A stretch of 64,000 nt of DNA. It comes from Phaeosaccion multiseriatum (lineage: Eukaryota; Protista; Ochrophyta, other classes). The notes beneath the pieces are model-generated. The model was not told the origin of the DNA and did no database searches. It saw only the letters and a program-made list of their open reading frames with translations. The translations under genes were made by a program, and so were the position numbers. The number at the start of each line of letters is the position of its first letter. Positions within the stretch are counted from its first letter, which is position 1. The stretch spans positions 3,381,102-3,445,101 of the forward strand of contig OZ218959.1 of NCBI GenBank assembly GCA_965112735.1. Reading direction: 5' to 3'. Of the stretch, positions 37,960 to 42,232 are shown one piece after another.

Positions 37960-38174
37960 GGCCAGTATTCGAGCCGCCACGGTGCAGCAGCGGTGTGTAC
38001 AGTAGCAGCGCACCTTTGGATTTGACCGGCCTAAGCGCCTTCCGTGCAGACAGGAATGCACGGCAGGACACGCCAGAGGGACGAGCCCGAATGGCGAGAG
38101 TCTCTTCGTGCGCTATAAATATCATTACATTTATATTCAATCCTTCAATCCTTTCGGCCCCTGACAAGGTTCTG

Positions 38175-38317
38175 GGTTCCAGGTTCTGGCCGGCGCCAGC
38201 CGGCCGGGTTCCAGGTTCTGGCCGGCGCCAGCCGGCCGGGTTCCAGGTTCTGGCCGGCGCCAGCCGGCCAGGTTCCAGGTTCTGGCCGGCGCCAGCCGGC
38301 CAGGTTCCAGGTTCTGG
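38175..38317 (+). repeat. Left subterminal tandem repeat, 32-bp unit x ~4.5
   Basis: ggttccaggttctggccggcgccagccggcc(g/a) starting at 38175, 38207, 38239, 38271, with a partial copy at 38303. Confidence 0.95.
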
Positions 38318-38709
38318 GGGAACGCCATGTAATAAGGCAATGATAAAGTGAGCCACCTAGGATGTGGGACAGACCACACACCCAGACAACCAACAGCAAG
38401 GGGTTCGTATCCTATGTTGAGCGTGTATTAGCTTTCTTTATCAATCTCACTTCCTATCTATCCTTCTCCTGCGACATGCAGCCATGCCGTTCATATGAAG
38501 CACGTGTTCCCCAACTGGCGACAATCCGGATTCGAACATACCAAACACCTTTGAGACTCCACAAAAGGCCAACCTTCTCTCTCTCCCAGCCTTCTTGTAT
38601 TACTTCGATTACTTATATGGACACCAACTACACTTATGTTCCTCATGCTACCTAACTTCTCCCCTCATGCCTCTGGCAAAACTCGCTGTACTCTGTTCTC
38701 GGCATTCTG

Positions 38710-41700
38710 TTGATGGTCAAAGTACAGCACGTGCCGGCGACATGCACAGTTGTCCTGCGAGATGCTCGCCTCAAGGATACCGGCGGAGTGGCAGTAGTAG
38801 GCGACTGTGTGTACATTTGCAGCAGCAGAGACAACAAGTTGTACGTTGTTCACGTCAAGGAGTCATTGACAGGGTCTCACGAGACGCGCGATTTTGACGA
38901 GGGCCGGGATGGGATTGACACTGTGGAAGGTGGGGCGGGTGTGCCAGGGAGGAAGAAGAAAGCCGAGCTCAAGATAGTGCAGACACTGCAGCAAAGTCAA
39001 GGTGACGCCCCAGGGAAGGTCGTTGAGCACTTCATGCCGCTTCGGAGTCCCATTGCGGTGTGTGTAGGCTTGGGCTCGGACAAGGACTACGATCTTTTCG
39101 TGTCTCAGCAGCTGCCGGGGCGTAAAGGGGGGCTCGTTCAGCTCTCCTTTCGAGCGCGCGACCCCACCTCTGCCCTTTGCACTGTGGTCGCCTCGCTTCC
39201 CGGAGAGCCGGCAGGTGTGACTGCTCTTTCGGCTTCTTGTAGTGCAGTACTCGTGGATAGGTCCTTGTTCGTGTTGGACAGATCTTCCCGACAAGACGAA
39301 GAAAAGGAGGGGTGAGAAGAGCAGAAGGAGGAAGAGGAGGAGGAGAAGGTAGAGGAGGAGGAGGAGAAGGAGGAGGAGGAGGAGGAGGAGGAGGAGGAGG
39401 AGGAGGAGGAGGAGGAGGAGGAGGAGAAGGAGGAGAAGGAGGCGGAGGGGGGGGGAAGGGGACAGGGGGCGGAGGTGGAGGAGGAGAAGGATTCTGCAGA
39501 GACGGTCGAAGCGCGGAATGAGCATCGCACGAGGAGCAGAGCTGGAGGAGAGTCTAGGGGGGTGAGGGGGGGGGCGGGAGAGGGTGGAGGGCATCTATTG
39601 CTCGCAGTGGAGAGCGTTGGCGAGGCGCCCTGTGGATTGCATGCAGCACCGACTGAGGTGTCCGAAGATGCGGATGCGAGACACGTCATGTACGTGGTTG
39701 ATCAAGGCGACCACTCCGTCAAGATGTTGTGGCAGAGTGCTGCCACAGAGCAATGGACTGTACGTGTGGTGGCAGGCGGCATCGGCAACGACAAAGCGGG
39801 CAAGAGCACTGGGAGCGGCACGGCCAAAATGGTCGCTCTCTTCAAACCTACCTGGGGCTGCTTCCTTGGTGGGAAGAGCTTCCTGTTCTCAGACAGTGGC
39901 ACACAGTGTATCCGGCTTCTTACGGACATGTACCCTCTAGCGGAGCGCCTTCTTCCAATGCTCCGGCGCTTGGCCGAGGCGTACCAGCTCCTCCCTTCCT
40001 GCGCTGTTGACGGCGTGGACATGCACAGAAATGCCAAGTCATTGACCGAGTCTGCAGCCAAGATGGCCTCTGTGCACCTCCACGTCGAAAAGCTGGCAGA
40101 GGACGCCGCAAAGCGGACCGGGAAGTCGCTCGCATCCGTTCAGGGGCCCGAGAGCGCCATCTCGCCTTCGCTAAGGAAGAGCATCAAGTGCGCCGTCATC
40201 GCCTTCTCGAAGCTGATGAAGAGGCTGAAGGAGGAGGTGAGTCACAAGTGCCACGACACGACGGAGGGGAAGAGCCCACTGCCTGTCTGCCTTGCTATTT
40301 TTTATCTTGCGCTGACATTTCCCCCATCTCCCCCTCCTCTTATATCGATGCTCCCTTGCTCCACTTTGGGTCTCTCTTGTCCTGCAGGGAGTGCCTGCAC
40401 GTGTGACCGACAAGATTATGGCTAAGGCATTGCTCACCTTAAATGTGGAGACCAGCTTCACGCAGTACCGCAATGGGGGTGGGGGGAACACCAACATTCC
40501 AGATGTGCTCCAAGTGCTTCGACGGCGACAGATTGTCGGGGTTGAGATGGCGAAGCGATGGAGTGGTGGCAGGGGATATGTCTACAACACGGACAGCAGG
40601 TCCAGCGGCCAGCAAACGTTCCGCGGCCACTACCACCACTCTCTCAATTTCAGCAGGCGTGTCGCTGCCCCCGTCTATACATGAGAAGGAAAGTTCCAGC
40701 ACGCTCTCTGTCTCCAGCGGAGCAAGCGACGAGAGAGCAGGAGCTGCGTATACTTCGTCAGGCGGCTCGAATCATGAGGCCATGATGCGTAACGCGGGTC
40801 ACAGACAAGGGAAAGGCCCAAGTTGGTTCTCTTCCCCTGTCAATCGCGTACGACAAGATCGAGAGTCTGGGTGATGACACGTCTGGGTATAAGCCAGGTT
40901 CGAGCAGCTTCAGGGGTGGAGGGGGGGGGCAGAGCAGCACGGGCACCCAGATCGTGCACCAAGAGGGAGATCTGGTCTACGTGAAGGCTGCGAATGGCTC
41001 GGGCAATGAGCTCTTCTTTGTGGTCCAGCTAAGAGAAGACGTAAAGGAGGCGTACAAAAAGGTCCGCAGAGGAGCTGGAAAGACAGGGAAGATGGGAAAG
41101 ACAGTAGAGCCTTCACACCCGGGCGTGCGACATTTTTTCAAGGGCAGCGCAGGTGGGGATGAAGCAAAGCGTGGCTCCGGTGATGTGGTATACAACTACA
41201 CCCATGATGCAAGCGTGAAGGTGGAGGCGATTTATGGTGCGTTGACTTCGTTCGGCAACGCGGCCTACCAGTACGAAGGCTTCTCAGTTGGGACGGAGGG
41301 AAAGCAAAAAAAGAAGGGCAAGAAGAAGGGAGGGAAGGGTCAAAGCGCTTTGTCAGTCCCCTCTGATGTCGCCACCACCAGCCCGACCATGCAGACACTT
41401 TTGACCAGGCGCTTGATGCGCTTTACCATCACGGAGGAGGAGCATGACAGCATCGTCGGTATTGTCAATGACTCAAGCAAAGAGGATATCGACAGGCAGA
41501 ATCGAGGCTTACGCGAAGCAGATGAGGAGGAGGAGGTCGCATCAGAAGACGAGGACAGTGAAGACGAGGGAGAAGAAAGCACGCCTCATCAGCGCAAGCT
41601 GGGAGTTATGGTCAGCACGAGGTCGTCCCGGGGCCGGTCGACAGGGGCGCCAGTGAGTTACAGAGATTTGCATCTACAAGAAGAGGAGGGGAGGGACAGT

Positions 41701-41757
41701 GTGTGTGGTGTGCAGGCAGGACGTCACAGAGGAGCGTCCACACATGCTGCTATGTGA
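38710..41757 (+). pseudogene. Decayed transposon gene: NHL-like beta-propeller + transposase-like C-terminal motif + BAH-like domain
   Basis: NHL-like blades (GVAVVGDCVYIC, MYVVDQGDHSVK, FLFSDSGTQCIR); LLTLNVETSFTQYRNGGGGNTNIP; frameshift near 40650-40680; in-frame TGA at 40783-40785; GDLVYVK..FFVVQL. Confidence 0.65.
39326..39490 (+). repeat. (GAG)n tract inside the transposon
   Basis: Run of gag/aag triplets just after a G|GTGAG donor-like site. Confidence 0.85.
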
Positions 41758-42019
41758 TACTGACGCGTGTGGTGGAGAGTATCACCTCGGCTGTGCGACG
41801 CCTCCTCTCACTGAGGTACCTGGGGGGGATTGGTTTTGTCCGGCGTGCCGCGAAGGGTAGGCTAGTAGGTTGGCGCGCGCGAAAGAACTCTGAACTCTCC
41901 ATTATAAAATGTACATGACGTACTATTTTTTTATTATTTGTATACTATTTTGCGGTCCCAGCCACACACGATGGGCACTCAGGGCTGGGCATCAGTCCCT
42001 CTTTCCCTCAGTCACCCCT

Positions 42020-42093
42020 AACCTGGAACCGAAGAGCTGGGTCAGGTTCCAGGTTCTGGCCGGCGTCAGCCGGCCAGGTTCCAGGTTCTGGCC
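42020..42093 (+). repeat. Right subterminal copies of the 32-bp unit (~1.5 direct copies plus an inverted 11-mer)
   Basis: ggttccaggttctggccggcgtcagccggcca at 42045, partial copy at 42077, inverted aacctggaacc at ~42020. Confidence 0.9.
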
Positions 42094-42232
42094 AGGGTCG
42101 CCTCAGAACCTTGTCAGGGGCCGAATCCTTCGACTCACTAAACATCTGTGATTTCATCCTCGTATCACCACATCTTCCACTCAGCTCGTCCACAGGACAC
42201 ACACAAGCACAGCACAAAGATAAAAATATAAA

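Follow-up and report, generated by a model that had tools for sequence, protein, structure and literature searches.

Among described transposons, the closest to the element reported here are the P element and THAP9, which supply the nearest solved structure to its transposase core (PDB 6P5A and 6PE2; Pfam PF21787, PF21788 and PF21789). The P-element transposase DmTNP has a triad of catalytic residues, D230, D303 and E531, with D339 as its D(2)H residue and an insertion domain at residues 339-528, and the [C/D](2)H motif that follows the second Asp belongs to the P signature (PMC8230255). Target-site duplications (TSDs) of the P superfamily measure 7-9 bp (8 bp for P, 7 bp for 1360 and Galileo, 8-9 bp for BuT5), and in BuT5 with the D. 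buzzatii P element short non-coding and internally deleted copies share the termini and the TSD length of their master (PMC3698922). Here we describe a 3,971-bp element at positions 38154-42124 of a 64,000-nucleotide stretch of the ochrophyte Phaeosaccion multiseriatum (contig OZ218959.1, positions 3,381,102 to 3,445,101 of the forward strand, assembly GCA_965112735.1), which we refer to as the window. With a probability of about 0.85, we consider this element to be a non-autonomous deletion derivative, presumably mobilised in trans, of a family of cut-and-paste DNA transposons with a transposase distantly akin to the P-element/THAP9 type.

By searching the genome (67-Mb assembly, 22 contigs) with the proteins of single exons we identified a second family, 41% identical to the window gene and present in seven near-identical copies. 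Its representative is an 8,373-bp element (contig 4: 4892380-4900752; the 8.4-kb element below), whose copies are ~99.6% identical to each other, have TSDs of 6-7 bp and carry terminal inverted repeats (TIRs) starting TCGACCCCTGAC (TCGACCCCTGACGTGC...). Three co-linear open reading frames (ORFs) of 533, 813-861 and 475-485 residues lie on one strand, with a divergent ORF on the other. Single metagenomic proteins hold the equivalents of ORF1-3 contiguously, from which it follows that these frames are exons of one gene. The window coding sequence aligns from ORF2 residue ~287 to the end of ORF3 (35-41% identity), so that the 5' third of the gene is missing from the window element. The upstream exons of the 8.4-kb element hold an invariant D (in DGM..KPGL), a second invariant D (in SDCE) and the D(2)H motif PDxxHxxK. 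The window copy starts inside the propeller described below and both catalytic Asp exons are absent; of the DDE triad and D(2)H signature of the P superfamily, all present in the family, it retains only the Glu. An earlier sequence-only reading of this locus had taken its gene for the 3' part of a DDE transposase and had looked to a longer autonomous copy with an upstream D..D region. The window gene indeed corresponds to the 3' two thirds of the family transposase, and the 8,373-bp element, autonomous in appearance and present in seven copies, has the two invariant Asp and the D(2)H motif upstream.

ORF2 of the 8.4-kb element was searched against 1.84 billion representative proteins. This returned 98 relatives, 35 of them at E <= 1e-10, all metagenomic; the ten whose records were checked are unnamed or 'hypothetical' and come from metagenome or assembly records. 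Relatives also occur, at small share, in public runs labelled plant metagenome. In an alignment of 26 N-terminal regions (A2) D165, D328, D355 and H358 are invariant, and the motifs follow in the order D in DGM..KPGL, a block of nine conserved Cys, D in SDCE, and PDxxHxxK. The Glu that the sequence-only reading had likened to the last catalytic residue of P-type enzymes is invariant in 35 homologues (pattern hxVExFF..R....P..LQY), the window's LNVETSF aligns with it, and the motif lies within a helix (residues 872-881) in the model of a metagenomic homologue, P0035. We take this helix motif (hExFF..R...P) to resemble the P/THAP9 motif with which the same reading had compared it.

Four converging lines point to kinship with the P element, and we grade the structural match as the decisive one. 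The core of P0035 (residues 319-744), folded alone with AlphaFold, reached a predicted local distance difference test score (pLDDT) of 92.4. Foldseek placed it next to 6pe2_A (9.1e-8) and 6p5a_A (3.5e-7); the next match stood at 0.078, and the runners-up (Mos1, TnsB, RAG1, Hermes and Transib) at 0.08-1.0. In VIA-align against 48,161 chains 6p5a_A was the sole chain at Z >=8 (Z 11.6 over 282 residues), followed by retroviral integrase cores at Z ~7 (next 7.4). These results hold for the core by itself, since the Foldseek and VIA matches of the whole 1,101-residue model are propellers throughout. When profiles of the A2 region were compared with PDB, 6p5a was the sole transposase listed, with weak E values of 1.1 and 0.71. 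The HMMER profile match covers 6p5a residues 296-351 and sets the second Asp of the family on D303 and its D(2)H motif on D339 of DmTNP (PMC8230255). Pfam searches of 47 homologues found PF21787 (TNP-like RNase H, N-terminal) in two (best 1.9e-4), NHL in six, PHD in two and SAP in two. Finally, the ten best named clusters in a language-model neighbour search of the Atlas are all P-type families, PF21787 among them; one of the top three clusters, from a basidiomycete, has no family.

The RNase H fold of P elements is interrupted, between beta5 and the Glu helix, by a large insertion domain, and the family shares this layout. In a model of P0035 residues 300-1400 (pLDDT 86.5; predicted template modelling score 0.82), residues 442-768 of the model form an all-beta domain, which follows the D(2)H motif and a helical stretch and precedes the helices of the Glu motif. 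With VIA this domain matches six-bladed NHL propellers (SOQ1, TRIM71/Lin41, NHLRC2 and PknD) at Z 27.6-29.5. The best Pfam NHL match among the six homologues has E 9.6e-10, and a profile headed by the genome's own sequences, both window pieces included, finds Pizza6 (5.8e-22), NHLRC2 (1.3e-11) and PknD (1.6e-11) in PDB. As it is modelled between the D(2)H motif and the Glu helix, the propeller (Z 29) stands at the insertion-domain position, where the sequence-only reading had already put it. Unlike P, the family has a six-bladed NHL propeller in the insertion domain and no detected GTP-binding domain. It differs from P also in a Cys-rich module between the Asp residues, in the lack of a detected THAP domain, in a beta-rich domain and a PHD finger at the C-terminus, in TSDs of 6-7 bp as opposed to 7-9 bp, and in genomic ORFs too divergent for the Pfam P families. 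The nine-Cys block, with a His in addition, was seen between the first and second Asp of all family members (A2 columns ~380-490; L043:3039-3800 in a copy of the 8.4-kb element). It has weak RING-like and Zn2Cys6-like matches in PDB and is apparently a zinc module inserted in the RNase H fold.

The beta-rich C-terminal segment had been called BAH-like, a call that the searches did not confirm. No match was found in Pfam (PF01426, E up to 10) or in PDB profile searches; the language-model neighbours of the segment belong to BAH and PWWP clusters but score 0.77-0.79, which is under the noise level of the tool, and in a homologue model it forms five short strands (pLDDT 57-85). The sequence-only reading had overlooked a PHD finger, which is the sole Pfam match in the window gene and in the 8.4-kb ORFs. 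The proteins of the window family and of the 8.4-kb element both end in this finger, as do those of the two nearest metagenomic relatives. In the 8.4-kb homologue (Pfam E 1e-11) its best PDB matches are the fingers of KDM5A/B, BAZ2A/B and UHRF1 (1e-13 to 1e-9), with WSTF also among the best. Several of the PHD fingers of KDM5A/B, BAZ2A/B, WSTF and UHRF1 read the unmodified H3 tail, which offers a lead to what the family's finger may bind.

The pairing of a DDE enzyme with a six-bladed beta-propeller and a PHD finger brings to mind RAG1-RAG2/ProtoRAG and Transib, by analogy only. RAG2 consists of a Kelch-type propeller and a PHD finger that reads histone H3. In the present family, unlike RAG, propeller and finger belong to the polypeptide of the nuclease itself, the propeller is of the NHL and not the Kelch type, and the core reaches RAG1/Transib with Foldseek E values of only 0.2-1.0. 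The P-type DDE core is thus of a known kind, and the NHL propeller in the insertion domain, the zinc-type module and the fused PHD finger make an unusual architecture. Within Pfam and the searchable literature we found no description of this architecture, and no paper in which an NHL domain is joined to a transposase.

The ends of the window element and their flanks are as follows.
38148-38153, no strand: left TSD, atcctt, identical to 42125-42130
38154-38174, + strand: left TIR, TCGGCCCCTGACAAGGTTCTG, 100% complementary to 42104-42124
38174-38333, + strand: left subterminal array, ~4.5 direct copies of a 32-bp repeat, each with the 16-mer GCCGGCGCCAGCCGGC, at 38189, 38221, 38253 and 38285
42044-42103, + strand: right subterminal repeats, ~1.5 units, with the 16-mer at 42059 (one mismatch)
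42104-42124, - strand: right TIR, 100% complementary to the left TIR
42125-42130, no strand: right TSD, atcctt, identical to the left TSD

The inverted ends are perfect over 21 nt (22 nt with one extra base), so the 21-bp TIRs and the 6-bp atcctt TSD of the sequence-only reading stand, with full complementarity and identical flanks. Across the genome the 21-mer terminus occurs, with <=2 mismatches, at 156+162 = 318 sites compared to 0+0 for the reversed control, and the TIRs are therefore not a chance pairing. Its terminal 12-mer core TCGRCCCCTGAC occurs 984 times, compared to 10 for the control. Most terminus sites pair into miniature inverted-repeat transposable elements (MITEs) of 100-360 bp, and from the 12-mer count family MITEs amount to ~490 element equivalents. 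Perfect TSDs beside the ends of MITEs, 4-kb copies and 8.4-kb copies measure 6 bp (n=18) or 7 bp (n=7); the 7-bp duplications lie in another register than a 6-bp match and are therefore real, giving a stagger of 6 or 7 bp. Further TIR-flanked copies with a steady TSD length, which the sequence-only reading had named as a check on itself, thus exist. The 32-bp repeat varies in copy number among sister copies, which differ by 32, 64 or 96 bp, and the near-palindromic 16-mer within it is a putative transposase-binding site. An Rfam search of the window element gave no match.

Three further copies of the ~4-kb element, 98-99% identical to that in the window, are found on contig 3, on contig 12 (inverted) and on contig 7 (truncated), and the two complete ones have their own TSDs, gaacct (contig 3) and gcttctc (contig 12). 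Since the four copies are this similar and carry different TSDs, the ~4-kb unit transposed whole, and it has moved in this way at least four times recently. The contig 3 copy has 739 bp extra near its 5' end. Older copies, ~92% identical, are found on contigs 16 and 9, and more distant degenerate paralogues of the transposase gene elsewhere in the genome. We considered the copies on contigs 16 and 9 as an intact master and rejected them, as stops are present and the first-Asp exon is absent; the second-Asp region is found in the contig 16 copy.

The 8.4-kb element and the window element agree in 11 of 12 terminal bases, and both carry the 16-mer in subterminal arrays with ~32-bp spacing, four times on the left and once on the right in the window element; the 8.4-kb element has it once on the left and three times on the right, in opposite orientation. 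For the exact 23-bp end of the 8.4-kb element, its own 14 termini are the only sites, and no MITEs have that end. The seven near-identical full-length copies with open frames, together with the hundreds of MITEs that share the family's end, suggest recent activity. TIRs with subterminal repeats, associated MITEs and a multi-exon gene are likewise features of BuT5/P (PMC3698922). As there, short non-coding and internally deleted copies share termini and TSD length; unlike there, the sole intact master shares with the window's subfamily only the terminal 12 bp (11/12) and the 16-bp subterminal motif.

Between these ends the window copy is laid out as listed.
38349-38565, + strand: filler that separates the left end from the truncated gene, ~215 bp from a very abundant repeat of unrelated kind (~40 listed matches, 87-93% identity)
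38707-39312, + strand: first retained piece of transposase coding sequence, with the initial NHL blades, counterpart of ORF2 from residue ~287 onward (tblastn against 8.4-kb ORF2: 35% identity, E 6e-25)
39313-39315, + strand: in-frame TGA stop, private to the window copy (39313 is T here and A in the contig 3, 12 and 7 copies)
39316-39585, + strand: poly-Glu/Gly-rich low-complexity insert, (GAG)n, within the propeller coding sequence, from sequence and translation
39586-40236, + strand: remaining NHL blades and a helical linker ending QGPE...KRLKEEE (41% identity to 8.4-kb ORF2, E 5e-42; 100% to sister copies)
40237-40387, + strand: intron of 151 nt, GT..AG, frame kept after its removal (1,317-nt contig of public run X5)
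40388-40675, + strand: exon encoding the helix motif LTLNVETSFTQYR of the catalytic Glu, whose codon is 40448-40450 (40% identity to the start of 8.4-kb ORF3)
40676-40677, + strand: 2-bp frame break, common to the contig 3 and 7 copies and absent in that of contig 12 (homology changes frame at 40675-40681)
40783-40785, + strand: in-frame TGA stop, common to the contig 3 and 7 copies (TCA in contig 12)
40786-40836, + strand: conserved family motif (R/K)QxxVTDKxKxxxGxxP, with G and P nearly invariant in 26 sequences
40954-41260, + strand: beta-rich C-terminal domain, the segment earlier called BAH-like, with conserved GDxVxVK...FFxxQL...VRWF...IxG
41500-41652, + strand: acidic tract followed by a basic SRGR motif, from translation and family alignment
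41668-41673, + strand: deficit of 2 bp, by which the PHD finger loses its frame in the window copy only (contig 12 has +2 and contig 3 +5 here)
41699-41857, + strand: PHD finger, a zinc finger of Cys4-His-Cys3 type (Pfam PF00628, E 1.9e-10; 41 bits, cut-off 24)

Without either catalytic Asp, and with two stops and two frame breaks, the window copy encodes no active enzyme. The sequence-only reading had described the gene as spliced and decayed. Its decay is borne out by the TGA at 39313, the frame break at ~40676, the TGA at 40783 and the deficit at ~41670, and the motifs it quoted (QGPE, LLTLNVETSFTQYRNGGGGNTNIPDVLQV and RP*CVTRVTDKGKAQVGSLP) are present in the translation as it gave them, CVTRVTDKGKAQVGSLP being part of a conserved motif of the transposase family. 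The copy on contig 12 is without the 2 bp at 40676 and has an open frame of 299 residues there, and contigs from all four public runs have an additional CA behind 41670. The (GAG)n tract differs in length among copies by 3-12 bp. Splicing is seen in the 1,317-nt contig of run X5, which skips the single 151-nt GT..AG intron in frame by joining 39596-40236 to 40388-41029. No intronless copy is present in the assembly, where every genomic copy retains 40237-40387, and the contig is probably a spliced transcript of the window subfamily. A second intron ahead of the PHD finger was considered and rejected, as sister copies and reads show a 2-bp difference there and hence a frameshift.

Several findings weigh against reading the family as P-type and the window element as its dependant. 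The fold evidence for the core comes from a metagenomic homologue that is ~27% identical to the genome's protein, and the invariant D, D and E, which would make up the DDE triad, are assigned by alignment and not by 3-D proximity. The link in sequence is weak (E 0.7-1.1 for the PDB profiles, 1.9e-4 for PF21787); the genome's own ORFs, those of the window and of the 8.4-kb element alike, searched both entire and split into domains, match no Pfam transposase family at E up to 10, and single-sequence PDB searches gave no transposase match. Neither the 8.4-kb ORFs nor the Pfam matches of the 47 homologues include a THAP domain, and the open segments upstream of the first conserved exon are without a C2CH pattern, although an unrecognised upstream exon is possible. 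The GTP-binding insertion domain PF21788, placed between beta5 and alpha4 in the P superfamily, had no match in the genome ORFs or the 47 homologues either, and the family TSDs overlap the described P range only at 7 bp. As no structure of a Kolobok, CMC/KDZ or MULE transposase is known to have been solved, the family could be closer kin to one of these. With regard to mobilisation and expression, no intact transposase with exactly the window TIR is present in the assembly, the putative cross-mobilisation would depend on a transposase ~40% identical, and the spliced transcript is probable rather than certain because the kind of run that X5 represents is unrecorded. The family could accordingly be a DDE transposon of another superfamily, or a new lineage of superfamily rank (with Kolobok, CMC/KDZ/Zisupton or MULE in view), for which P is simply the nearest structure solved so far. 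Besides the 6-7 bp TSDs, the missing THAP and GTP-binding domains and the missing Pfam P-family match of the genomic ORFs, this would agree with the Cys-rich module between the two Asp and with the basidiomycete Atlas cluster without a family in the top three. Other superfamilies, too, have the D(2)H motif of the P signature. We nevertheless hold such a placement to be unlikely, since in Foldseek Mos1, TnsB, RAG1, Hermes and Transib trail P by 5-6 orders of magnitude, P alone exceeds Z 8 in an independent aligner, with the N-terminal helical domain among the 282 residues aligned, PF21787 is matched by two family members, and the ten best named Atlas clusters are P-type.

Two further explanations, both rejected, concern the interval itself. 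Given that Pfam sees nothing but a PHD finger in the window gene, and that the 5' part of the element holds a captured fragment of an unrelated repeat, the gene might be captured host cargo, an NHL/PHD fragment between MITE ends in the manner of Pack-type elements. This is very improbable, as the same order of core, propeller, Glu helix, C-terminal domain and PHD finger recurs in the TIR-bounded 8.4-kb element as well as, contiguously, in metagenomic proteins, the window exon carries the invariant Glu motif of the family, all genomic paralogues found are multi-copy or degenerate copies of that same family, and no separate intact single-copy host gene turned up. Slighter still is the chance that two separate MITE insertions bracket an old transposase pseudogene and that the 3,971-bp interval is not one mobile unit. 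Family MITEs are numerous enough (~490 element equivalents) for such an arrangement, and one MITE-ended insertion does lie in the older gene copy on contig 9. It is contradicted by the matching 6-bp TSD on the outer flanks of 38154-42124 and by the same TIR-to-TIR unit at three other loci with different TSDs (gaacct on contig 3, gcttctc on contig 12).

We therefore favour the deletion derivative of a P-type family, for which the following mechanism may be proposed. Read from the 8.4-kb relative and the metagenomic homologues, the full enzyme begins with a helical domain and an RNase H-like core with the first Asp, followed by the Cys-rich zinc-type module, the SDCE Asp and PDxxHxxK. It continues with the insertion domain (helices and NHL propeller), the Glu helix LxVExFF..R, the VTDK..G..P motif, the beta-rich domain, an acidic/basic tail and, in the nearest relatives, the PHD finger. 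The window copy keeps intact what is needed in cis, namely the 21-bp TIRs and the 32-bp subterminal arrays with their 16-bp near-palindrome, where the 12-mer end may serve for recognition and cleavage and the 16-mer for binding. The family transposase would then move it in trans, cutting with a 6- or 7-bp stagger. As the 8.4-kb copies are the only intact source of transposase now in the assembly, any driving of the ~490 other elements by them would have to act across subfamilies; alternatively, these elements may have lost their own masters. Propeller and PHD finger might help to assemble or aim the transpososome through contacts with proteins or chromatin.

A more far-reaching version, which we put forward tentatively and regard as doubtful taken as a whole, is that the family is an undescribed, deep-branching clade allied to P, possibly of superfamily rank, in which an NHL propeller replaced the GTP-binding insertion domain and a Cys-rich module and a PHD finger were gained. 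Its enzyme might then be a single-chain analogue of RAG1-RAG2 in which chromatin state gates or aims integration, and the 8.4-kb element might be active, with ~490 MITE-type dependants. If propeller and PHD finger do control the place or time of action, this would be a convergent case of the coupling between transposase and chromatin known from V(D)J recombination, and would add to the kinds of insertion domain known from transposases with an RNase H fold. In practice, the 8.4-kb element is a possible genetic tool in its host, and the family should be masked or annotated in the genome.

Some neighbouring and related sequences were inspected as well. On contig 9 a 4,991-bp element (2020275-2025265; L031:501-5491) has the same TIRs and a 6-bp TSD, gtctac; it sits inside the beta-rich-domain region of the older transposase gene copy there, with a second MITE end 350 bp upstream. 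We considered it as a longer version of the window element and rejected it, since its cargo is unrelated. Contig 10, the window's own contig, holds a distant transposase paralogue (2890483-2893559; L042) with 59% protein identity, which is degenerate, with five TGA in the core region. The divergent ORF of the 8.4-kb element (L047:7711-9390 and L043:704-2113, both on the - strand) found no Pfam, PDB or word-index homologue match to back a ULP1-like protease reading; it runs from an Arg/Ser-rich part through an acidic tract to a C-terminal part in which, by eye only, a ULP1/C48-like H...D...QQ..SNSCG pattern can be made out.

The filler also differs between copies. In the contig 3 copy the 739 bp more (L033:793-1530) contain an ORF of 245 residues (...LMIDVTLTD...LVPFAIEQQGAFG...), which had no match in a Pfam search and has at least 150 matches in the genome, some of them inside open frames of 1,000-1,180 residues. 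The filler repeat is probably another (retro)element with a nuclease-like domain. A 496-nt contig of run X5 (record 17) matches 38576-38884 and continues upstream for 186 nt with sequence unlike that of the window, and could come from a further copy, or else from a transcript whose 5' part is different.

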